From Epiperipatus broadwayi (Eukaryota > Animalia > Onychophora), in the NCBI GenBank assembly GCA_028023455.1, contig JAQFVV010000006.1, positions 15,252,001 through 15,316,000 of the forward strand: DNA of 64,000 nucleotides, given 5' to 3'. Shown here piece by piece: positions 3,721 to 39,078 of the stretch (position 1 is its first letter; every line of letters starts with the position of its first letter). Made by a program: the position numbers and the translations under genes. The notes under the pieces are model-generated. The model ran no database searches. It had not been told where the DNA came from and saw only the letters and a list, made by a program, of their open reading frames with translations.

Positions 3721-4604
3721 TTAAATTAAAATTGGATAAAATTAGAAAAGAATGACACTAAACATAGAATTTAAAATTCCTCTGTTTAACACATTATATA
3801 AAATCATGATTTTTTTGCAAAACTTCTTAGAATAGATGTATACTTCTAAATTCTATTGCTGAAAGCAGATTATTTATTAACAAAGAAAAGAAAAATTGAA
3901 AGAATATAATAACGAAGTGTGTTATGAATACTTTCGAATTATTTTTTCAAAAGACAAAAAAAAAATGCTGAAACATCTGTTAACTACGTAAACACTCTAG
4001 AACAAGAATTTTCAAACTTTTTTCGGGCACAGATCTTTTTATCAAAAACTTTTAAAAACACTGAACCCCTAGTCATTTACTTTACTTACTCAAATTAAGA
4101 AATTTTTTTGCTGGTCTGGTTGAATTTTGGATTTGGGGTAATTTTAATTAAATATTTCATTAGATTTCAAACCTTTCATTTTAATCACTTTTAATTAATT
4201 ATTGAAAAAGATAAAACAACTACAGAATATGGCATTATTTTGTGCAACATTTAATATTTAACCTGCACTAATGAAAATTAAAGCAAAAAATATGAGTAGA
4301 GGTTTTTTTTTTTTTAATTTTTGACATTTATGAAATAAATATGTAAATTCAAAATAAGTACAGATATTGAAATCACTGTATTAAACATAAAAATAAAGTG
4401 AAAAAATCAACACATTCAGGCAGACAACAACAAGGTAAAAAACATTAAGCATCACATGATAACATTTCCTATACTAGCACATTAATTGTTGATAAACAGA
4501 GCAAAACTCTCCATACAGTATTGGCACCTGTGCTAAACAGAGTAATCAAAGGATGCCAGAAGGCTTGTGCATAAAATCCCTATCTAATGCCTACTCATCC
4601 AATA

Positions 4605-4646
4605 TCCCCAGACTAGTTTCTGACTTGTGGCCTTCGTCAGTGAGGA
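4605..4646 (-). ncRNA. Type I hammerhead ribozyme motif, family A
   Basis: TCCTCA-CTGACGA-A-GGC-cacaa-GTC-A-GAAA-CTAGTC-TGGGGA; core intact, G.U in helix II. Confidence 0.7.
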
Positions 4647-5335
4647 GCTTTGGATCTGAGAGCACTGCATCCAGATCTTAGGATCTAATGCAACCCTCTA
4701 GTAACCACCTTTTATCTCTACTTAACTACAAAACTATGAGAATGAAATTTGGAAATACAAAAAATATTTTCAATCTAAGCTCAATAGCTTATATAGTCAT
4801 ATGGGTCTGAACTCAGTTCAGCACCCATACATTTTGGTGTCTTTGGCTCTTTTACAACCATAGCCACCACTATCCTATTAGGCAGGATTGGTGTTAAACC
4901 ATTAAGCATCACATGATCACATTTTCTATACTAGCACATGAATTGTTGATAAACAGAGCAAAACTCTCCATACAGTATTGCCACATGCTAAACAGAGTAA
5001 TCAATGGATGCCAGAAGGCTTGTGCATAAAATCCCTATCTAATGCCTACTCACCCAATATCCCCAGATTAGTTTCTGTCTTGTGGCCTTTGTCAGTGAGG
5101 AGCTTTGGATCTGAGAGCATTGCATCTAGATCTTAGGATCTAATGCAACCCTCTAGCAAACACCTTTTATCTCTACTTAACTACAAAACTATGAGAATGA
5201 AATTGAAAACACATATAAATTTTTTGTGTTTTCAATTTCATTCTCATAGTTTTGTAGTTAAATAGAGATAGAAGGTGGTTGTAGAGGGTTGCATTAGATC
5301 CTAAGATCTAGATGCAGTGCTCTCAGATCCAAAGC

Positions 5336-5377
5336 TCCTCACTGACGAAGGCCACAAGCCAGAAACTAGTCTGGGGA
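5336..5377 (+). ncRNA. Type I hammerhead ribozyme motif, family A
   Basis: TCCTCA-CTGACGA-A-GGC-cacaa-GCC-A-GAAA-CTAGTC-TGGGGA: 6-bp helix I, palindromic helix III ACTAGT, predicted GUC cleavage after 5371. Confidence 0.75.
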
Positions 5378-5792
5378 TATTGGATGAGTAGGCATTAGAT
5401 AGGGATTTTATGCACAAGCCTTCTGGCATCCATTGATTACTCTGTTTAGCACAGGTGGCAATACTGTATGGAGAGTTTTGCTCTGTTTATCAACAATTAA
5501 TGTGCTAGTATAGGAAATGTGATCATGTGATACTTAATGGTTTAACACCAATCCTGCCCAATAGGATAGTGGTGGCTATGGTTGTAAAAGAGCCAAAGAC
5601 ACCAAAATGTATGGGTGCTGAACTGAGTTCAGACCCATATGACTATATAAGCTATTGAGCTTAGATTGAAAATATGATTTTTCGTTTTCAATTTCATCCT
5701 CATAGTTTTGTAGTTAAGTAGAGATAAAAGGTGGTTGCTAGAGGGTTGCATTAGATCCTAAGATCTAGATGCAGTGCTCTCAGATCCAAAGC

Positions 5793-5834
5793 TCCTCACT
5801 GATGAAGGCCACAAGCCAGAAACTAGTCTGGGGA
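5793..5834 (+). ncRNA. Type I hammerhead ribozyme motif, family A
   Basis: Same fold with CTGATGA core; predicted cleavage after 5828, 457 nt from the previous site. Confidence 0.75.
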
Positions 5835-6931
5835 TATTGGATGAGTAGGCATTAGATAGGGATTTTATGCACAAGCCTTCTGGCATCCATTGATTACTCT
5901 GTTTAGCACAGGTGGCAATACTGTATGGAGAGTTTTGCTCTGTTTATCAACAATTAATGTGCTAGTATAGGAAATGTGATCATGTGATGCTTAATGGTTT
6001 AACACCATTCCTGCCTAATAGGATAGTGGTGGCTATGGTTGTAAAAGAGCCAAAGAAACCAAAATGTATGGGTGCTGAACTGAGTTCAGACCCATATGAC
6101 TATATAATCTATTGAGCTTAGATTGAAAATATTTTTTTTCGTTTTCAATTTCATTCTCATAGTTTTGTAGTTAAGTAGAGATAAAAGGTGGTTGCTAGAG
6201 GGTTGCATTAGATCCTAAGATCTAGATGCAGTGCTTTCAGATCCAAAGTTCCTCACTGATGAAGGCCACAAAGCAAGAAACTAGTCTGGGGATATTGGAT
6301 GAGTAGGCATTAGATGGGGATTTTATGCACAAGCCTTCTGGAATCCATTGATTACTCTGTTTAGCACAGGTGGCAATACTGTATGAGAGTTTTGCTCTGT
6401 TTATCAACAAGGTAAAACTCTCCATACAGTAGTGGTACCCTTTGCCAACCTGAGTAATCAGTGGATGCCAGAAGGCTTGTGCATAAAATCCCTATCTAGT
6501 ACCTTCTCATCCAATATCCTCAAACTAGTTTATGGCTTGTGGCCTTTGTCAGTGAGAAGCCTTGGATTTAAGAGCATTGCACTTAGATCTTAGGATCTAA
6601 TGCAACTCTTCAGCAGCCACCTTTTATCTCTACATAACTGCAAAACTATGAGAATAAAATTGAAAACAAATATTTTCAATCTAAGCTCAATAGCTTGGGA
6701 ATATTGGATGAGTAGGCACTAGATAGGGATGTTATGCACAAGCCTTCTGGCATCCATTGATTAATCTGGTTGGCACAGGGTGACACTACTATATGGAGAG
6801 TTTTGCCTTGTTTAATAACAATTATGTGCTAGTATTCAGGCAGAATTAAACTTCAACAAAATTACAACAACTAAATATTTTAATTAGAATTATAAAAATA
6901 ATACAAAATAAATTAGCTTGGAAAACTGAAT

Positions 6932-8560
6932 TTAATGAAATGGGTGCACCTCGTGATCTGTCAACAATTTATCTATATCCTGTTTTAAATTAGTGAGTTG
7001 CATTCTCAAATCTCCATGTTTCACTGATATGCAATTTATATCTGTTCTGAAGCAGGTTTAAAACTACTGAAGCCTCTCTCTGCCAGATATGATGATGCAA
7101 ATGCCAGCAAATACATTTGTACAACAATTCATAGAGCCAGGTACAGAAGTGGAATATCTTGTTGCAGTCAAAACTTTTGATAACCCTGTTTGAATTGTAA
7201 CTTGACATCCTCATTCATGCTGATAGTTTTAAGCTCATTTTGCAAAATTATATTTGGTTCTGCACTAGTAGGGTATGGATTTATTATCCAGTCTTAAGAT
7301 TTCCAATGATAGAATATCTTTGAACCTAGTTTTGAAATCTAAGTGAAGAGACTCCAAGTGGTTGACTGACAGCAAAATATTTTCTACTTGGTTAGTTTGG
7401 GAACTGGGAAAGCTCAGATCTTGCAATATTTTACTTAAAAAAACATTAATCTGGCAACAAAAGCCAATATAACCAATTTTGCTTTGATGAGATTCAAATT
7501 GTCTCTCTTTTTTTTTTTAAAGTGTCATAGCATCAACCGGGATGCAAACCTGCAACACAGGCAACTGCCTGCAAGTGCAAGGCAGTCGCGCTGACCTCTT
7601 GACCACCAATGCTAGACAAAATTGTCTCCTTGCAGTTGTAAATTAACATCATTAAATTGTTCAAATAAATTGAATAAATAAGCAATATCTGTTTTACTCT
7701 TAAGTAAATTTTCTTTCAAATTGGAATCTTTGTCTCCCAAAACCTCTAAAACAGATTGAAAAAGTGCAAAAAATCTCACCAAACATAAACCTTTTGAAAG
7801 CCAGAAGACTTTGGTATGGAGAACCAATCGACAGAAATCTTTATCGCTTTTCTTCACATAATAGAGCGAATAGTTTAGTGTTCAAAGCATTACTTCGAAT
7901 TTTGTTCACAGCTGTTATAACAAACTGAAGTGATTGATGCAATGTGTCACTAAGGTTTTTGGGTACTAAATGTTGCCTATGGATTATGCAGTGAACTGCA
8001 AATATTTCAGGTACGTGTTGTTTTGGGTAACATATAAAACCACAATAATGATCAACTATAGCTGATGCTTCATCTGTTGCAATTGTTCAAAGTTCATATC
8101 ACATTTGTCACATCATACGAATCAATTTATAATGTTTTATGAAAGCATGTCCGTACAAGATTGACAGATTCTGTTAATATTGTATTATACCACCACAAGC
8201 AAGTGCGGACATGCAATGTTTTTTCATGTCCACACTTGTTTTGATACATTCGATAAGACACTGCACAGACATGTTTGTGCTAAATGTATTTTAATGCATT
8301 CTTACGTGATTTTTTTTAATGACACATTTTATCTTTTCATTTGCAAGTTTGGAATGTAATGTTTTTATCAATAAAGTATGTTTTTTTTTAATTAGTTTAT
8401 TTTTCAATTAGGTACCTATTGGAATCATAGATATTTTGAAGTAACAAACAAATAGCAGTAGTAAGGGTATCTATTTTTGCTGTCATCAACCCCCAAATTT
8501 TTTTATTGAAACTATCGACCCCTAGAAAGTTTAAATCGACCCCAGAGATACACATAGGGA
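6932..8560 (-). mobile_element. hAT (Buster/Charlie, SCAND3/ZBED-like) transposon relic with disrupted transposase
   Basis: Minus-strand translation gives ATDEAS..FAVHCIIHRQHLV, RLVLHTKVFWLSKGLCLVRF, VNLQLQGD-NLNLIKAK and a C-terminal dimerisation region (SSYLAERGFS..DKLLTDHEVHPFH*). A degenerate hAT-like end lies at ~8515-8557. Confidence 0.9.
7506..7618 (-). mobile_element. Short tRNA-derived SINE-like insertion with poly(A) tail
   Basis: Interrupts the hAT transposase. 10-bp TSD AAATTGTCTC (7496-7505, 7619-7628). Minus strand has A-box TGGTCAAGAGG, B-box GGTTTGCATCCC, an acceptor-like stem GCATTGG/TTGATGC and an A-tail. Confidence 0.65.
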
Positions 8561-22887: not shown

Positions 22888-24131
22888 GTATGGAGTATAA
22901 AAATATTCTATGTTAAATGATTAAAACCTAGCTTATTAATTAAAAACCTGCCTATTTTAAGATTTTAATCTAAAAAAATTGTATGAGAACAATAGACCAA
23001 ATTTGTATAAAAGCTCCCCAAAATCTGTTGTTCATTGATTTTAGTCATTATATTCCATTACATTCAATCATTGATTTCAGTCATTAGATTCCATTACATT
23101 CAATCGATTTATTCACCAGATTTTTCCAAATCTACCACTTAAGATCGTATTCCAAACACTGGAGCTCTTATTCTTTGCAACAAGCCACAATTATTGCCAC
23201 CAATTTCACCAAAATTATTGCTTGACAATAGATTGACAAGTGGCCTGCAGTAATAAAATGAGATAGTAGATTATTCCAAGTAATGTTCTTTGAAATATGC
23301 TTGGCTATGCATCTTACCAAGACAAACTCCATGCTCTATCCTGAACTTTCATTATCCAACATGTCAAAATTATAAATCCTTGGAAAACTGAGCTCCTAAA
23401 TACAAGCTAAGGGAAGAGTCAATTGACCATTTGAAAAATTACAACTATAAAATGAACAAAGGTAGCTACCTCTGCAATAAATAAACTTAGTGATAATATA
23501 AACTTTCATATACCATAAGCCAGATGTTGTTATAATAATTATTTTCTTAATGTATACACACATTTTAACAGTAATTATTGATTTAGAAATGTATGTATTA
23601 TAAAATCTTAGTAATTATGAACCAGATATTCATGCACTTAATTAATTTCTTCATGGATTTATTATTATGATAAATATTGATTTATGTAATTAATAGACCT
23701 TAATATATTTTTGAAATTTTAGTCAAAAGACAAATATTTTACATTTTAAAGTAGATCAGTTTTGTAATTAGTTGCTATTATTAACATTCACGATACATAT
23801 AGCAAATGAGATTTTCCTTGTATAAAAGAAATCAGAAATCGTTAAACTATTGTTTCCAAATAGATTTGATATTTTTTAAAATTGTGCTTTAGTTATATAT
23901 GTGAAAATGTATTGACATATAGGTCAGACTTAAGTGAGGTATTTTAGCCTGCATATAGATTAAATGTGTATGGCTATGAGTGTAATAGCATGGTCTGGTC
24001 TAAGTTCACAATCTATATTTTGCATGGCTGGGGTTCAATCACACTGCACCATGTCTTAGCATATTCATGCTGGTATGTCTGGATTATATTAATAAGAAAG
24101 GATAGTAATAGCTGAAAATACACACGCTTAT

Positions 24132-24631
24132 NNNNNNNNNNNNNNNNNNNNNNNNNNNNNNNNNNNNNNNNNNNNNNNNNNNNNNNNNNNNNNNNNNNNN
24201 NNNNNNNNNNNNNNNNNNNNNNNNNNNNNNNNNNNNNNNNNNNNNNNNNNNNNNNNNNNNNNNNNNNNNNNNNNNNNNNNNNNNNNNNNNNNNNNNNNNN
24301 NNNNNNNNNNNNNNNNNNNNNNNNNNNNNNNNNNNNNNNNNNNNNNNNNNNNNNNNNNNNNNNNNNNNNNNNNNNNNNNNNNNNNNNNNNNNNNNNNNNN
24401 NNNNNNNNNNNNNNNNNNNNNNNNNNNNNNNNNNNNNNNNNNNNNNNNNNNNNNNNNNNNNNNNNNNNNNNNNNNNNNNNNNNNNNNNNNNNNNNNNNNN
24501 NNNNNNNNNNNNNNNNNNNNNNNNNNNNNNNNNNNNNNNNNNNNNNNNNNNNNNNNNNNNNNNNNNNNNNNNNNNNNNNNNNNNNNNNNNNNNNNNNNNN
24601 NNNNNNNNNNNNNNNNNNNNNNNNNNNNNNN
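24132..24631. other. Assembly gap (500 N) inside the family B array
   Basis: Run of N; the same unit start lies on both sides. Confidence 0.99.
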
Positions 24632-24784
24632 AATAGCTGAAAATACACACGCTTTATATATAGCTGCGTCTATATATGTAATAGACAGGGTATGAGCACA
24701 GACTTTCACATGACCCACCACTCTCCACACTATCTCATAACACTGATACACCTGAACACACATATGTTGAAAAGATAAATAATC

Positions 24785-24828
24785 ACCAATATACGTATTT
24801 CATGCTAAACCAGCAATCATCAGTTGGT
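24785..24828 (-). ncRNA. Type I hammerhead ribozyme motif, family B
   Basis: ACCAA-CTGATGA-T-TGCT-ggttt-AGCA-T-GAAA-TACGTATA-TTGGT; palindromic helix III ATACGTAT, AUA site. Confidence 0.75.
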
Positions 24829-25257
24829 CCAGATTACCATCTCTACACATATATGCTACAAGTGCTCAGATATATATTAAGATAGCAAATTCTCCTACTT
24901 TAATGGACAGGCCTCAATCCACTCCACACTCCAACTCTTCAACCGTCCATCCAATTGAAAATCCGATGATGGAACGCTCAAAGGCCACCCTGAGGCCGAG
25001 ATTATTGTCACACCCATGTTGACCTAAAGTCAATCTGACCCCTCATGTACAGGACATAATCCATTAAATACATATACAAGGGATAGGCAGACATCTCTAA
25101 TATGTAATAGCTGAAAATACACACGCTTATATATAGCTGCGTCTATATATGTAATAGACAGGGTATGAGCACAGACTTTCACATGACCCACCACTCTCCA
25201 CACTATCTCATAACACTGATACACCTGAACACACATATGTTGAAAAGATAAATAATC

Positions 25258-25301
25258 ACCAATATACGTATTTCATGCTAAACCAGCAATCATCAGTTGG
25301 T
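25258..25301 (-). ncRNA. Type I hammerhead ribozyme motif, family B
   Basis: Identical motif 473 bp from the previous one. Confidence 0.75.
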
Positions 25302-25589
25302 CCAGATCACCATCTCTACACATATATGCTACAAGTGCTCAGATATGTATTTAATGGATTATGTCCTGTACATGAGGGGTCAGATTGACTTTAGGTCAAC
25401 ATGGGTGTGACAATAATCTCGGCCTCAGGGTGGCCTTTGAGCGTTCCATCATCGGATTTTCAATTGGATGGACGGTTGAAGAGTTGGAGTGTGGAGTGGA
25501 TTGAGGCCTGTCCATTAAAGTAGGAGAATTTGCTATCTTAATATATATCTGAGCACTTGTAGCATATATGTGTAGAGATGGTGATCTGG

Positions 25590-25633
25590 ACCAACTGATG
25601 ATTGCTGGATTAGCATGAAATACGTATATTGGT
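25590..25633 (+). ncRNA. Type I hammerhead ribozyme motif, family B (inverted copy)
   Basis: ACCAA-CTGATGA-T-TGCT-ggatt-AGCA-T-GAAA-TACGTATA-TTGGT; the only change is in loop II; predicted cleavage after 25628. Confidence 0.75.
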
Positions 25634-26984
25634 GATTATTTATCTTTTCAACATATGTGTGTTCAGGTGTATCAGTGTTATGAGATAGTGTGGAGAGTGG
25701 TGGGTCATGTGAAAGTCTGTGCTCATACCCTGTCTATTAAGAAAGGATAGTCTAAATGTGTAAGCAATATGACAAGCATTAAATAAAAATTTATCAAACT
25801 GGAAAAGTATTGTAGTTTTATAATTACAATATAAAACAATGATAATAGGTTTCTCCTAACATCAAACCATCCATGAAGATATACTACTTTGTTTAATTTT
25901 GCTTGGTGGTGTTTTCTTATTTAAACTTTTATTAGTAAACTTTGTATTATTTATTTAAATTTGGCTGTTTGTTTACCGTGTCTGTCTCTCAATCATTTAA
26001 TAAATATGTCTCATACGTTGAACTGAATTAGTGTCAAGGGCAAGTAATTTATTTTGTTAGGTCTGATCATCATTAGTGAATATTTGCTCACCCCAAATAA
26101 TTTCTTTAGGTTCATTATGTAGCCTAATGACACCCTCGAATGATGTGCTTAACTCATGTACGATATCCAGTACAATATATTGTACTGGGTCGACCCTTTT
26201 GCTATAGGGTATACAATATTCAGTTAATATGGGGTTTTAATGCAATTTACCATAATATGCATACATGCTACACATTCACATGTCTATATATTTTTTATTC
26301 TATTTATTGAATGTTACATACAGGTATAACTGATTAATGATTCTTTTCTATGACCAAATTGCATCGCCTTTGCAAATAAATCAATAGCAAAGTACCTGGA
26401 AAATACGATATTTCCTGGCCATCCAAACCTTGGACATTTTATATTCTATTTGTCTACAATAGCAAAAGTAGATCTAAAAAAATAATTTGAACAGTCAAAA
26501 AGTTAATTATTTCAGGATGATTTTTCTTTTTTTCTTATGAAATCCGTCCCTATGCTTATATAACTAAGTAATTAAGTGTAATAGCGTTCTTTAATTGAGG
26601 AAATTAAATAGCCGAATTTTATTTTTAAAATAGTATTTAATAAACAAGAAATAATCAAAATACAAATTATTCATTAATACATATCCCTACAAAACATTAC
26701 AATGTATACATTATTAAAAATAAATATGAACATTACAAGCAACCAAATTAATCTTTGACATTAATAGCTATAATAGTTATTGTTAATCATAATTATTAAA
26801 TAACCTAGTCAGTCCATTAAGAGTTTGTATATTTAAAAGTTAAATGAATATAGAGCTCTCATTCACCTTACCAATAATATTTATTTTAATGTAGGTTAGC
26901 ATATACAGACCATGGACATATATTTTAAGTTTTTATGCAATACTGCGATCCATGATTTTAGAGTGAAGAATTTTCTAATTGGCT

Positions 26985-33429: not shown

Positions 33430-35439
33430 CTAACAAAAAAAAAAAAGTAATAATTGTGTATTCATGATTTTGCCAGTTACTCATGTATATGTGTGTGCTT
33501 ACATATGTTAAATAAATATTCTATAACTTTCTGACTGTCATATGTGAAATCTATGAATAATTGAATTATACAATATTATGTAATAACGCTTCTCTTAATA
33601 ATACAATACCCCCCCCCCCCCATGGCAGATGAAATATAGGACATTTTCTAAATATGATAAAATGAATATTTTTCCATCATTAAACAAAATTTTATTATAT
33701 GTTGATTGTTTTATGATTGAGTCGAGTATAATGACAATATGATAACAATCAAGCCCTATTAACATTATCAAAAAGTGCAATTTTAGGCAAGTTTATTCAA
33801 AATCTGGCCTTAGAATAAATAAGCAGCAAAAACATGCCAGAAATTTCTCAGATCGGCTTTCTTATTGTTTTCAATAAGGATTGAAAACTTTTTTTTACTT
33901 ATTCTTAATTCTAATGCTGGAAAATAAAAATCTCAATTTGATTAGAATAAAACTGTCACATAATTTCCAGGGCAACTGATCATATAATTATATATATGAA
34001 TAAAAGCACTTTCTATTAGCTGATAATTTAACTAAAACAAAATAAGCTTGAATTTTATTTATATAAAGCAGATTTCATATGTGGAAGTATAAAAAAATAC
34101 AATACCCATCATTAATAAATGTAATGAACTTTACAGATAACAAGCATGCAATATTCCAGATAGGTAACAAATTATACTCACACCGCCCCCCCCCCCCCTT
34201 TATTACCATTATTATATTTACATCAGTAAAGACAGTCTTATTTACTTTAAGAAATTCACAACTATTAATATATTGCCTTTTACACATTAATAAACATCTG
34301 AATATATAATTAAATAGTGATAATGTTTTTATCTCTCTCAATACTAATATGCTCATTTTTATATATTAATCTTTCATTGGAGTTAATGTTTATATCTGGG
34401 CTAGAAATACGATAATCTCTAGTCTAATAAGTGATTAATAAATAATCATTAATCTACGTATATAAAGTAGGTGGTGATAAAGATATGAATGAAGAAAATT
34501 TGCTATTTGTAAATCAAATATATATGCTTACAACAAGAATCTTAAAAAACAACCAAAAAGAAGCATCAACAAATGAAAAGATTTATGTATAAATTACATT
34601 CTAGAAATAAATAAGTTTTCTAATTAGGACTTTTTAGAGGATAATATCTAACAATAAGGTATTAAGTTTTGTGATTTATAACTTATCACCAATTATCATT
34701 TAGGGTCTATAAAATGAATTAAAGCAATGGAATAATCATTGTTTTCAAAATTGATTGTTATAATTTTAAATTTGGTTTTGCAATGTTTTTCTCTTTTTAT
34801 TTCTGTTTTATAAATATTATTTTAGAATTTAGGCATCAGTAAAAACAACAAATTAGGTTATTTTTTTTCTTGGATTGGATTTCAAGACATGCATAACATG
34901 CCATCCAGAGCATCCCCCAGATTGCAGCTAAGGGAATGGCCTTCAGATATGAAGGTTAGCTATGAATAAACGAAGTAAATAAGCAGTAACTGACAATAAG
35001 ATAACATTTATTATTAGAAAGTGGTGAAAGGGGACAGTGGCATATTTACTTATATAAAATGCCACAATTCCTATGATGGTAAAGGTGTAATGGCGAGTGT
35101 TGACCGCCATTAAATAAGGCAATACCCTGCTCGGTGCTGGACAAGCAACATCATTTTCTTCCAAATCGGGGAAGATCACTATAAGTGACAACAAACACAA
35201 CAGATTAAGGTTATAATAAAAGTTGCTCAGCAAAGGCTATGGGAAACCACTTTGCTTTATAATTCATTGTTGTTTTTTTTTTTTACAATAAGTATGTCTA
35301 CAAGATTCATTCAAACTGGTGTTGAGATCTTAGCTAAGGATGGCTTTGGTGTCATGCCTGGCAGGAATAGACATAAGCTTGAGTTGTAAACCTGTAAAAT
35401 TCTCATAAAGATTATTCACTGAGAGAAGAAATATTGAGA

Positions 35440-36572: not shown

Positions 36573-36802
36573 CTAAAAATAAAAAATATCATTCAAATTA
36601 TATTAAATGATTAAATAATAATATAAAAAGCAGTAACAAAGTTTGTTACGACTATCATTATAGAATTTATTGTCTAACTTTAGTAAGTGCTAATGTACCT
36701 ACCTCTTAATAATAACTAAATCCATTTTTACAATATTTCTATTTATTATTTAAAAACTACAAAATATTTAATAAATAAATGCAAGTTATCTAATTTATTT
36801 AC

Positions 36803-39078
36803 CTTGTAATGACTTTTTTAGCACTTGTAACTGGTTCCTCCTCCTCTTCTTCTTCAAGAATGGCAAAATTTTCTGATTCAGTTTTTTTTAAGCGTGAAAG
36901 CATTTTCCTACCAGTTTTAGCACTAGGACTTTCTAAAGAAAGCCTCTTTATACTTCTAGTTTGCTTTGGAGATGTATTTTCACTACTTTCAGATAATCGC
37001 CTTGTCCGCTTTGCAATTGGCGATGAATTTTCTTCGGCAATTACAAACAAACTTTTTACACTACTATCTTCAATAATTGCAAAATTTTCTGATTCAGTTT
37101 CCTTTATGCCTGAAAGCAATTTCTTACCAATTTTAACATTAGGACTCTCTAAAGGAAGTCTCTTTATATTTCTAATTTGCTTTGGAGATGTATTATCACT
37201 ACTTTCAGATAATTGCCTTGTCCGCTTTGCAATTGGTGGTGAATTTTCTTCGGCAACCACAAACGAACTTTTAATACTATTAGCGAGAGATCTTAAACAT
37301 GGCTTACTTATAGGAGCATCACTTTCTTTGTCAGAAGTGAATCGGTTACTTCTCTTAAATGACTTTCTAGGTGATTCTTTATTGCTTTCTTTGTCTGAAT
37401 CAAACGGATTATCTCTCTTAAGCAACTTTCTAGGTGATTCTCTTTGTTGCGGGCTTAAAGCTCGATCAACCTCTTGTGGTAATGATTTACGAGATTGAAG
37501 CTTAATCGCTGACTTGGTACTCTTGTCTGCCAAAGAATTTAGATTAGTTTTACTTTCAGAGCGCCGTCTACTTAAATTTTTTATTTTTAATCTGGTTAAC
37601 ATAGGAGATATTTCACTAGGACCTTCTGGAGTGTTTAAGTCTAATTTAACTTTTTTAGAAGAGTTGTTTAGTTCATTGATTACGTTTTTTGATGAAATTG
37701 ATTGAATTTCTTCAGAAATTGCTTTAGAACTTTTTTCTGAAATATTATCAAGGTTGAAAGAAGTTTTTAATCCGTCATTGGAAACATTAAATGAGATTTC
37801 TTCATCAATAATTATTTCCTTCTCATTATTAAGAGTTGATTTTTCAGCAGTAGTTGGCATGATTAAATTATCATCATTAAATGATAGATCTTTATTATTA
37901 TTGAAATCTTCATAAATTGAGTATTGTTCAGGTTGACGTTCTTGCATCATTAATTCATGACTTTTCTTTTTCTCAATAAAAAGATTATCTGCAATAGGAG
38001 TGCTTATTCTATTCATCCCAGAAGAACAGGATTGTTCCACACTAGTAATATTTTCTGCTTCAGAGACAAAATTTAAAGTTGTGTTGTTTAAACTGCTTGA
38101 ATTCTGAGAACTTCTTTGTTTAAAATTTATAAAGCTTTTATCACTATCCTTATCGTGTGACAAATTCAAATCTTCATTGTCAGCTATCAAAACATCATGA
38201 GAACCTATTTTAGGACTTTGGCTCATCAATGAATTCAATTTTTTTATAGATTTAGAAGGAGAACATAGAGATGTATTAGACCTTTCTTTAATATTTGCAG
38301 GAGATATACTTTTAGATATATTTAATCTTAATGAATTATTGCTCATTTCAGTTGATGAGTTCAACTTTTTTATAGATTTAGAAAGAGAGCTTAACGATGA
38401 GTTAGATCTTTCCTTAATATATCCAGGTGATATCCTATTTTTAGATACATTTACTTCTTTGTTATAAGTTACATCTTGTAATGAATTATTGCCTATTTCA
38501 GCTATATCTTCATTTGAAATATCTTTAGCAGTTGACACCACATTTGCCTCTTCAATAGTTGTAATTTCATCAACAATTTCTATATCATTGTTTGAATTTC
38601 CCTTTTTATTATTTTCTTCAGCCATACTTCTTTTATTAGGAACTTTAACATTTTTATTAATGCTTTTGCTATCCCTAGAATCAGCATTTTGAAATTGACA
38701 CGAATCTGATTTATTAATATTGGTATAAGAATCTTGAGAAATTTGTGGAAAGTTATGAGTGCCTTTCATTGTTAATTCGAAATTAACAATTGATGTTGGG
38801 CTTCTATTGGATTGATTTTCAGATGTTTGATCTCCGCTTGATTTACTTTTATAAGAAAGTGGAGAAAGAATTGGACTAATAGGCTCTTGAGTAAAAGGAA
38901 TATGTTCACCAAAAAAATCTGTAGCAGGCGAATGTTTTTTATTAGTTGATGTGTTTATAACTATAGGATAATTTTTCAACTTTGATGGACTCTCAGGATA
39001 GAACCAATTATCAATATGGTTGAGTTGTTCAGTACTCCCAATGGACATTGATTCTTGAATGGTTTGGACCTCTTGTTT
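36803..39078 (-). CDS. 2276-bp exon encoding a ~758-aa Ser/Asn/Lys/Glu-rich, probably disordered region of an unidentified nuclear protein
   Basis: Uninterrupted ORF in AT-rich DNA (track 36799-39048, extending to KQEVQTIQES). Acceptor TTTTAAG at 39079-39080, donor AAG/GTAAAT at 36802. Many SP sites and basic clusters; no catalytic domain recognised. Confidence 0.88.

Follow-up and report, generated by a model that had tools for sequence, protein, structure and literature searches.

The locus considered here, positions 4425-6833 of a 64,000-nucleotide window from the onychophoran Epiperipatus broadwayi (contig JAQFVV010000006.1, positions 15,252,001 to 15,316,000), raises the question of how an array of a non-coding 457-nt unit carrying a hammerhead ribozyme motif came to be inserted in the genome. 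In a preliminary description, made from the sequence of the window, the array had been taken for one multimer of a retrozyme-like element that entered the DNA in a single insertion. The analysis led to another answer. The stretch 4425-6833 very probably consists of two nested insertions of a high-copy non-coding retrozyme, that is, a non-autonomous Penelope-like element (PLE), made by target-primed reverse transcription of the PLE type acting on both strands of the target.

Tandem Repeats Finder (TRF) returned a period of 457, with 2.6 copies and 96% matches, at 5219-6410, in agreement with the unit length proposed before. The repeat is called family A, and its unit coordinates (U) refer to the copy at 5372-5828, U1 being the first nucleotide after the predicted cleavage site. 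The array amounts to about five unit equivalents, as had been estimated, but it is not uniform: BLAST and inverted-repeat searches resolved it into four blocks that alternate in strand, 4439-5218 (minus), 5220-6410 (plus), 6398-6696 (minus) and 6696-6835 (plus). By BLAST, blocks 1 and 2 are 95-100% identical to the reference unit, and blocks 3 and 4 are 85-89% identical to it. The 11-bp target-site duplication reported around the array, ATTCAGGCAGA, was found at both edges, and a second, internal pair of 13 bp, CAACAAGGTAAAA, had been overlooked (Table 1); 13 bp is the maximal length of this second duplication, which measures 7-13 bp depending on the assignment of terminal microhomology. Since two pairs of duplications and two age classes are present, two insertion events took place, each with its own duplication and its own two inverted arms, and the single insertion of one multimer had to be abandoned. 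In the window the older element (4425-4440 together with 6418-6833) is interrupted, 16 bp from its left end, by a young one (about 4441-6404).

The older element ends at about U120 and about U143, and its left stub is the reverse complement of an older-subfamily terminus found at another locus (L009:1-23). In the younger element the left arm has the outer "tailed" end, at about U170-172, and the right arm the "short" end, which reaches 6410 if a CAACAA microhomology is counted as element. At the junction between its arms, the two arms of the inverted repeat I16 are 92% complementary and lie 1 nt apart (about 11 nt for the arms defined by BLAST). Matches to Rfam miRNA models at 5133-5304 were rejected because they are produced by the palindromic arm junction.

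All six hammerhead motifs of the array lie at the positions given for them earlier, three being intact and three decayed (Table 1). The window was scanned with a structural descriptor (CUGANGA; helix II, 3 bp or longer; GAAA; the closing 15.1-16.1 pair and one further pair; H17; helix I, 5 bp or longer). It gave six matches in the 64 kb, three in family A and three in a second family, B, at 24785-25633, as compared with 0.015 expected in Markov-random sequence of this length. The hammerhead motif is therefore far above chance. The consensus of family A reads UCCUCA-CUGACGA-A-GGC-CACAA-GCC-A-GAAA-CUAGUC/UGGGGA, the slash marking the predicted cleavage site. Its core (C3 U4 G5 A6 N7 G8 A9, G12 A13 A14, A15.1-U16.1 and H17) is complete, as it is in 3 of the 6 window copies, and N7 is the sole polymorphic core position of the family. 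Helix I has 6 bp (UCCUCA/UGGGGA, with one G·U) and is formed in the minimum free energy fold; helix III, ACUAGU, is palindromic and intramolecularly gives only two pairs around a 2-nt loop. The motif is thus a minimal type I hammerhead with a palindromic helix III, as had been recognized, and cleavage is predicted only for two paired copies, which would yield 457-nt monomers. The fold calculated for the monomer RNA (-153.5 kcal/mol, against -117.2 ± 5.9 kcal/mol for shuffled sequences, z = -6.2) is a branched rod in which helices I and II are formed. In metazoan type I hammerheads helix I measures 6 bp, helix III is short and palindromic, and the motif is active as a dimer (PMC4209133). Type I hammerheads are likewise found in newt satellite 2, Schistosoma Sm-alpha and Dolichopoda pDo500, which are tandem or dispersed repeats; there too helix III is palindromic and so weak that the dimer is needed (PMC4209133, PMC7229834).

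Table 1. Insertions, target-site duplications (TSD) and hammerhead motifs at 4414-6844 of the window. U, position in the family A unit.
Feature	Position	Strand	Basis or remark
Older insertion, TSD, left copy ATTCAGGCAGA	4414-4424		Identical 11-mer at 6834-6844
Older element, left terminal stub (about U120 down to U105), separated by the younger insertion	4425-4440	-	Resumes at 6418 as ...CTCTCCATACAG
Younger insertion, TSD, left copy CAACAAGGTAAAA	4428-4440		Identical 13-mer at 6405-6417
Younger element, left arm, minus-sense multimer: U172-1, full unit, U457-313	4441-5218	-	BLAST 95-97%; inverted repeats I1-I4
Intact hammerhead, helix II pairing preserved via G·U	4605-4646	-	Descriptor, sequence
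Decayed hammerhead: G8>A, helix II mismatch, helix III palindrome broken	5060-5101	-	Sequence
Younger element, inversion junction, palindrome centre 5219	5205-5222		I16 arms 5157-5218 / 5220-5281
Younger element, right arm: U307-457, full units 5372-5828 and 5829-6286, U1 to about 119	5220-6404	+	TRF period 457; BLAST 95-100%; end mapping
Intact hammerhead, identical to family consensus; predicted cleavage 5371/5372	5336-5377	+	Descriptor, sequence
Intact hammerhead, N7 = U	5793-5834	+	Descriptor, sequence
Decayed hammerhead: 1-nt insertion and change in helix II 3' strand	6250-6292	+	Sequence
Younger insertion, TSD, right copy CAACAAGGTAAAA	6405-6417		Matches 4428-4440
Older element, left arm: about U105-1, then U456-278; 85-86% identical to unit	6418-6695	-	BLAST
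Decayed hammerhead of older element: G8>A, G12>U, C17>U at cleavage position, helix I changes	6517-6558	-	Sequence
Older element, right arm: U1 to about 140-145; 89% identical to unit	6696-6833	+	BLAST
Older insertion, TSD, right copy ATTCAGGCAGA	6834-6844		Matches 4414-4424

The genome assembly (5.6 Gb, 18,588 contigs, about 28% GC) contained at least 1,615 candidates for the family A unit at a first look. The 31-mer GAAGGCCACAAGCCAGAAACTAGTCTGGGGA, which runs from helix II through GAAA and helix III to the 3' strand of helix I, was matched exactly at 33,788 places genome-wide (16,720 on the plus and 17,068 on the minus strand), the reversed control giving 0. Family A is thus, as had been supposed, a dispersed non-coding retrozyme-like family, with at least this number of exact hammerhead 31-mers. 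Among the places listed for contig 1, the close strand switches were minus-then-plus in 14 of 14 cases and plus-then-minus in none.

Twenty-nine family A loci of 3.4 kb each (cited by L-numbers) were fetched, and 21 of them contained a complete element; in all 21 a minus-sense left arm is followed by a plus-sense right arm. Maximal flanking duplications of 10-14 bp were found for 15 of the 21, to which L013, with 11 bp identified by eye, can be added (16 of 21), whereas a left flank paired with the right flank of a different element gave at most 9 bp in 300 trials. The length of the duplication is variable, from 7 to 14 bp or more, and the duplications overlap the element ends via microhomology. 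One end of the element is located at U111-123 (...GCTCTGTTTAT) and the other at U151-175 (...GATCATGTGAT...) in 20 of the 21 complete elements, the right end of L013 being placed by eye at U119; in the remaining one, L028, the right end runs into older copies and is unplaced. The end positions scatter over 8-25 nt, one terminus being consistently about 35-60 nt longer. On each DNA strand the target flank joins the 5' end of minus-sense sequence, and the arms meet at a different unit position in every element, with an overlap of 1-15 nt at 24 of 26 junctions. The insertion signature of PLEs (an inverted 5'-truncated copy, a tail at one end and a variable duplication) was recognized in 20 of the 21 complete elements and in both elements of the window.

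A plain satellite or segmental duplication that grew by unequal crossing-over, without any transposition, would explain the tandem 457-bp units. It is refuted by the dispersed short arrays, which number in the thousands, lie on different contigs and have common defined termini, each with a duplication of its own, and is close to impossible; the preliminary description had already set target-site duplications of other copies against a plain satellite, and the 16 elements mentioned above bear this out.

The same plan was found in two further families. Family B, with an unrelated 473-nt unit, is represented by one element at 24105-25739 of the window, which has the duplication AGAAAGGATA, minus-then-plus arms and ends at U159 and U111; its left arm is broken by a run of N (about 24132-24631). 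The family B hammerhead, ACCAA-CUGAUGA-U-UGCU...AGCA-U-GAAA-UACGUAUA, carries a basal U·U in helix II, its helix III is an 8-nt palindrome, and no Rfam model matched the family. Family C, whose unit has 410 nt and for which at least 1,394 candidate places were counted, was seen at L063:777-2072 and L009:535-660. It follows the two-arm plan and has ends at about 102-109 and about 166-178, one of each kind in 7 of 8 elements. Over these three unrelated families, one short and one long end were combined in 28 of 29 elements, for which a probability of about 6e-8 was calculated under independent choice of ends with equal odds.

The short end of family A lies just 3' of a small hairpin and a U-rich stretch, AGAG-UUUUG-CUCU-GUUUAU (region U100-119). 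The short end of family C likewise lies just 3' of a hairpin followed by a U-rich stretch, AGAGC-UAUUAGCAU-GCUCU-UUAUAU (unit positions about 75-105), although the two families otherwise share only the hammerhead. The hairpin and U-rich stretch could be a start signal for reverse transcription.

Inverted arms of tandem units, unequal in length and flanked by duplications, would also be left by a foldback-type DNA transposon such as Drosophila FB or sea-urchin TU, whose long terminal inverted repeats consist of tandem repeats and which depends on a transposase for its movement. Such an origin is highly improbable for family A: its termini are not equivalent, one being longer, and they scatter; the duplication varies in length and overlaps the ends by microhomology; the inner junctions are variable and use microhomology; and in each of three unrelated families the hammerhead lies upstream of the ends by a constant distance. 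All these features are published traits of PLEs (PMC11167929, PMC8557442).

In PLEs, partial tandems, an inverted 5'-truncated copy beside the 5' end and a "tail" of 30-40 bp, often at one end only, have been described by Craig et al. 2021 (PMC8557442). Purified PLE protein cleaves and extends both target strands, prefers AT-rich DNA and begins reverse transcription at two adjacent internal sites, about 85-92 nt and further (roughly to 130 nt) downstream of the hammerhead cut, the spacing between the two starts being the tail; insertion persists when the hammerhead is mutated, and RNA that has not been processed serves as the main substrate (Frangieh et al. 2024, PMC11167929). Family A resembles these insertions (PMC8557442, PMC11167929) in its partial tandems, in the inverted 5'-truncated copy at the 5' side, in the tail at one end and in its AT-rich targets, and probably also in the cutting and extension of both strands from two internal starts downstream of the hammerhead cut. 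It differs from PLEs in having no open reading frame (ORF) and in a tail of about 35-60 nt instead of the 30-40 bp reported.

In the mechanism that we propose for each of the insertions, a GIY-YIG endonuclease would make staggered cuts about 10-14 bp apart, and each freed 3' end would prime cDNA synthesis on plus-sense repeat RNA. Synthesis would begin inside the RNA, at either of two places that lie about 116-123 nt and about 151-175 nt downstream of the hammerhead cut. Each cDNA would span one to several units, and the two minus-sense cDNAs would be joined at a variable point by a microhomology of a few bases. The product would be a minus-sense arm followed by a plus-sense arm, with the "tail" at one end only. 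In the window, the younger element landed 16 bp inside the older one, beside the terminus of the latter. We infer that PLE enzymes are the mobilising agents and that the ribozyme is active.

Within one duplication, an inverted 5' segment is joined to a 3' segment by microhomology in L1 twin priming as well, where, as Ostertag and Kazazian are said to have described in 2001, the second target strand also primes on the RNA. In L1 this is an occasional by-product with an arbitrary second priming site, whereas in family A it is the norm and two preferred starts are used, one each.

The nature of the template bears on the earlier explanation of the array, according to which self-cleaved 457-nt monomers circularise and one rolling reverse transcription produces the whole 2.4-kb array in a single insertion. 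The unit joints at the cleavage site are seamless (C/T without indels in 110 of 110 copies), the arms reach 3.6 units, and of 666 variants within elements 604 (91%) are singletons and 36 are common to all units, so that the units were near-identical at insertion. These observations, together with the 11-bp duplication around the array, are what a circle would give, and uncleaved multimeric transcripts would account for the seamless joints and the singletons just as well. The two pairs of duplications and the two age classes require two events, and the two arms of opposite sense produced in each event are impossible from one pass round a circle. As mentioned above, purified PLE used mainly unprocessed RNA (PMC11167929). 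A single rolling-circle insertion is for these reasons very unlikely to have produced the array.

For the two-strand insertion proposed here, linear cleaved monomers were not the templates, since the termini lie at about U111-123 and U151-175 and not at the cleavage site. No enrichment of the inner arm ends at the cleavage site was found at the 26 junctions. Arms that seemed to begin exactly at U1 proved to be an artefact of the BLAST query boundary (ungapped extension); a start at U1 is present only in the older element of the window, about 1 in 52 arm ends, which is compatible with chance. Uncleaved multimers and religated circles would both fit as templates, and the spectrum of variants within elements agrees with either. 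It is possible, if doubtful, that the pairing of a short with a tailed end records a coordinated reaction, in which the protomers of a dimeric PLE ribonucleoprotein would cut the two strands about 12 bp apart and each start at a different one of the adjacent sites on a hammerhead-processed, possibly circular RNA.

Candidates for the enzymatic machinery are abundant. A total of 10,241 GIY-YIG candidates were found in the genome, and ORFs of 750-900 aa, in tandem and inverted arrangements, encode RVT_1 followed by a C-terminal GIY-YIG; in one PLE ORF compared with Pfam as domain-sized pieces, RVT_1 scored 44.9 bits and GIY-YIG 39.5 bits. Whole AT-rich PLE ORFs (L051:2801-5503 and L052:2089-4743) gave no Pfam match at E ≤ 10, and domain-sized pieces scored well above the cut-offs. 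Since the same ORF matches only as domain-sized pieces, whole-protein Pfam scans may under-report on this genome.

Two candidates for a closer connection of PLEs with the loci studied were rejected. A family-C-like segment located 360-600 nt upstream of the L055 PLE ORF is not part of the PLE, as other copies match only from query position 628. A 749-aa ORF in the window (36799-39048, minus strand) is not a PLE, as it has no similarity to the L051 ORF and matches no Pfam family. Spacers between tandem PLE ORFs (L051:5795-5850 and L036:2175-2225) contain a conserved hammerhead-like motif, GCC/GGC-UUGAAAA-[6-bp stem-loop]-CGAAAC-GUU. Having neither CUGANGA nor G8, it is not a canonical hammerhead and may be a degenerate or variant PLE motif.

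Several results weigh against the proposed interpretation, above all where the ribozyme is concerned. No Rfam hammerhead model reported family A: none reached the gathering score, a search of 4300-6950 (about 2.6 kb) with E ≤ 10 gave no match, nor did 5325-5390 (66 nt) alone, and the Rfam scan recommended in the preliminary description was thus negative; family C gave 23.5 bits (E = 3e-4) with Hammerhead_HH9, below the gathering score of 52. Helix II of family A has 3 bp (GGC/GCC) with A·A at 10.1/11.1, instead of the canonical helix of about 4 bp with G10.1-C11.1, and activity could be low or protein-dependent. In the hammerheads of newt satellite 2, Sm-alpha and pDo500 the canonical G10.1-C11.1 pair is present, unlike in family A. 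Older family A copies have C·A or G·A at this position, and the sister family C has the canonical G-C, with ACCGGU as helix III. The hammerhead of young family A copies is not conserved beyond the rest of the unit (mean divergence 2.25% versus 1.9%, rank 314 of 416 sliding windows), which is expected because dead-on-arrival copies decay neutrally, so that this test is uninformative. Finally, no PLE that shares the hammerhead or the start-site region of the unit as an integral part was found in 28 sampled loci of more than 10,000 candidates, where searches with the descriptor and, by BLAST, with the units of families A, B and C detected adjacent retrozyme fragments only.

Other comparisons point to conservation of the motif. 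Families A and C can be aligned only across the hammerhead, and there two compensatory double changes distinguish them, G-C to A-U in helix II and U-A to C-G in helix III with the palindrome preserved; paired cells amount to 92%, versus at most 46% with the partners slid. The basis of this covariation is two lineages only, which counts among the points against the interpretation. Contigs (RNA or DNA) of four other species are deepest over 5744-5903, that is, the hammerhead with about 50 nt upstream and about 70 nt downstream, and in their best-supported differences only the free N7 varies within the 42-nt motif. Every hammerhead feature is retained in 80 of 104 young copies. This is evidence that the motif is selected at the level of source copies.

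These data also bear on the possibility that mobilisation proceeded as proposed but that the hammerhead is an inactive or dispensable relic of the PLE pseudo-long terminal repeat (pseudo-LTR), with no RNA processing in the life cycle. The A·A at 10.1/11.1 and the negative Rfam result are in line with it, and so are arms that cross several uncleaved hammerheads and whose inner ends avoid the cleavage site. PLE insertion in vitro was unaffected by hammerhead mutants, and RNA-seq showed no ends at the cut site (PMC11167929); the minimal hammerheads of PLEs cleave poorly in vitro (PMC4209133). A relic is less easily reconciled with an invariant core, helices I and II and a palindrome all retained in the consensus of a family of 34,000 copies, with the retention of these features in families B and C and the compensatory changes between A and C, and with a hammerhead that, together with its flanks, is the best conserved part across the four other species. 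In addition, HHR_Amex2, a retrozyme hammerhead of the axolotl, has a basal mismatch (U·U) in helix II; its cleavage is weak in the single motif and good in dimeric form (PMC7229834). The basal mismatch of family A thus has a precedent and may still lower the activity. A relic hammerhead is on the whole unlikely, and a hammerhead acting in a PLE-mobilised retrozyme is preferred.

Older copies of the family, 77-91% identical, were located within about 1.5 kb of young ones at 7 of the 29 loci, far above the prediction from copy density. A preference for the family's own end region has been reported for PLE endonucleases (PMC11167929). The 7 loci, together with the young element of the window lying 16 bp from an older terminus, suggest, in this small sample, that family A prefers its own end region or its own copies for insertion.

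Family A is a metazoan non-LTR retrozyme, very probably a non-autonomous PLE, and belongs to a known kind of element. Hammerheads were found in PLE pseudo-LTRs by Cervera and de la Peña 2014, with motif pairs 100-700 bp apart on opposite strands (PMC4209133), and a PLE origin of non-LTR retrozymes has been proposed (PMC7229834, 10.64898/2026.07.22.740005). Like the metazoan non-LTR retrozymes (PMC7229834), family A consists of non-coding tandem repeats (150-450 bp there) with one type I hammerhead per unit, whose helix III is too short to work singly, and has a low GC content (39% in the unit), duplications longer than 4 bp and a copy number within the thousands to 10^5. Unlike them, it has a unit, of 457 nt, at the top of the published size range. 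Metazoan retrozymes yield linear and circular RNAs, and family A may do likewise. Inverted arms, unmentioned in Cervera and de la Peña 2020 (PMC7229834), are the rule in the families described here.

Until now, animal retrozymes and PLEs have been linked mainly through the hammerheads that they share, their co-occurrence and the similarity of pseudo-LTRs. Three unrelated retrozyme families now have the full PLE signature at the nucleotide level, including two internal starts and priming on both strands, which were previously seen in vitro only. That the arms cross hammerheads without ending at the cleavage site agrees with the in vitro result that cleaved RNA is not the main template. For annotation, such arrays are to be read as nested two-armed insertions and not as satellites or single concatemers. 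The main worth of family A lies in a large and clean genomic record of PLE-style two-strand insertion, and if the reading of a coordinated reaction is true, its approximately 34,000 insertions would be a natural record from which to read the mechanism of PLE integration.

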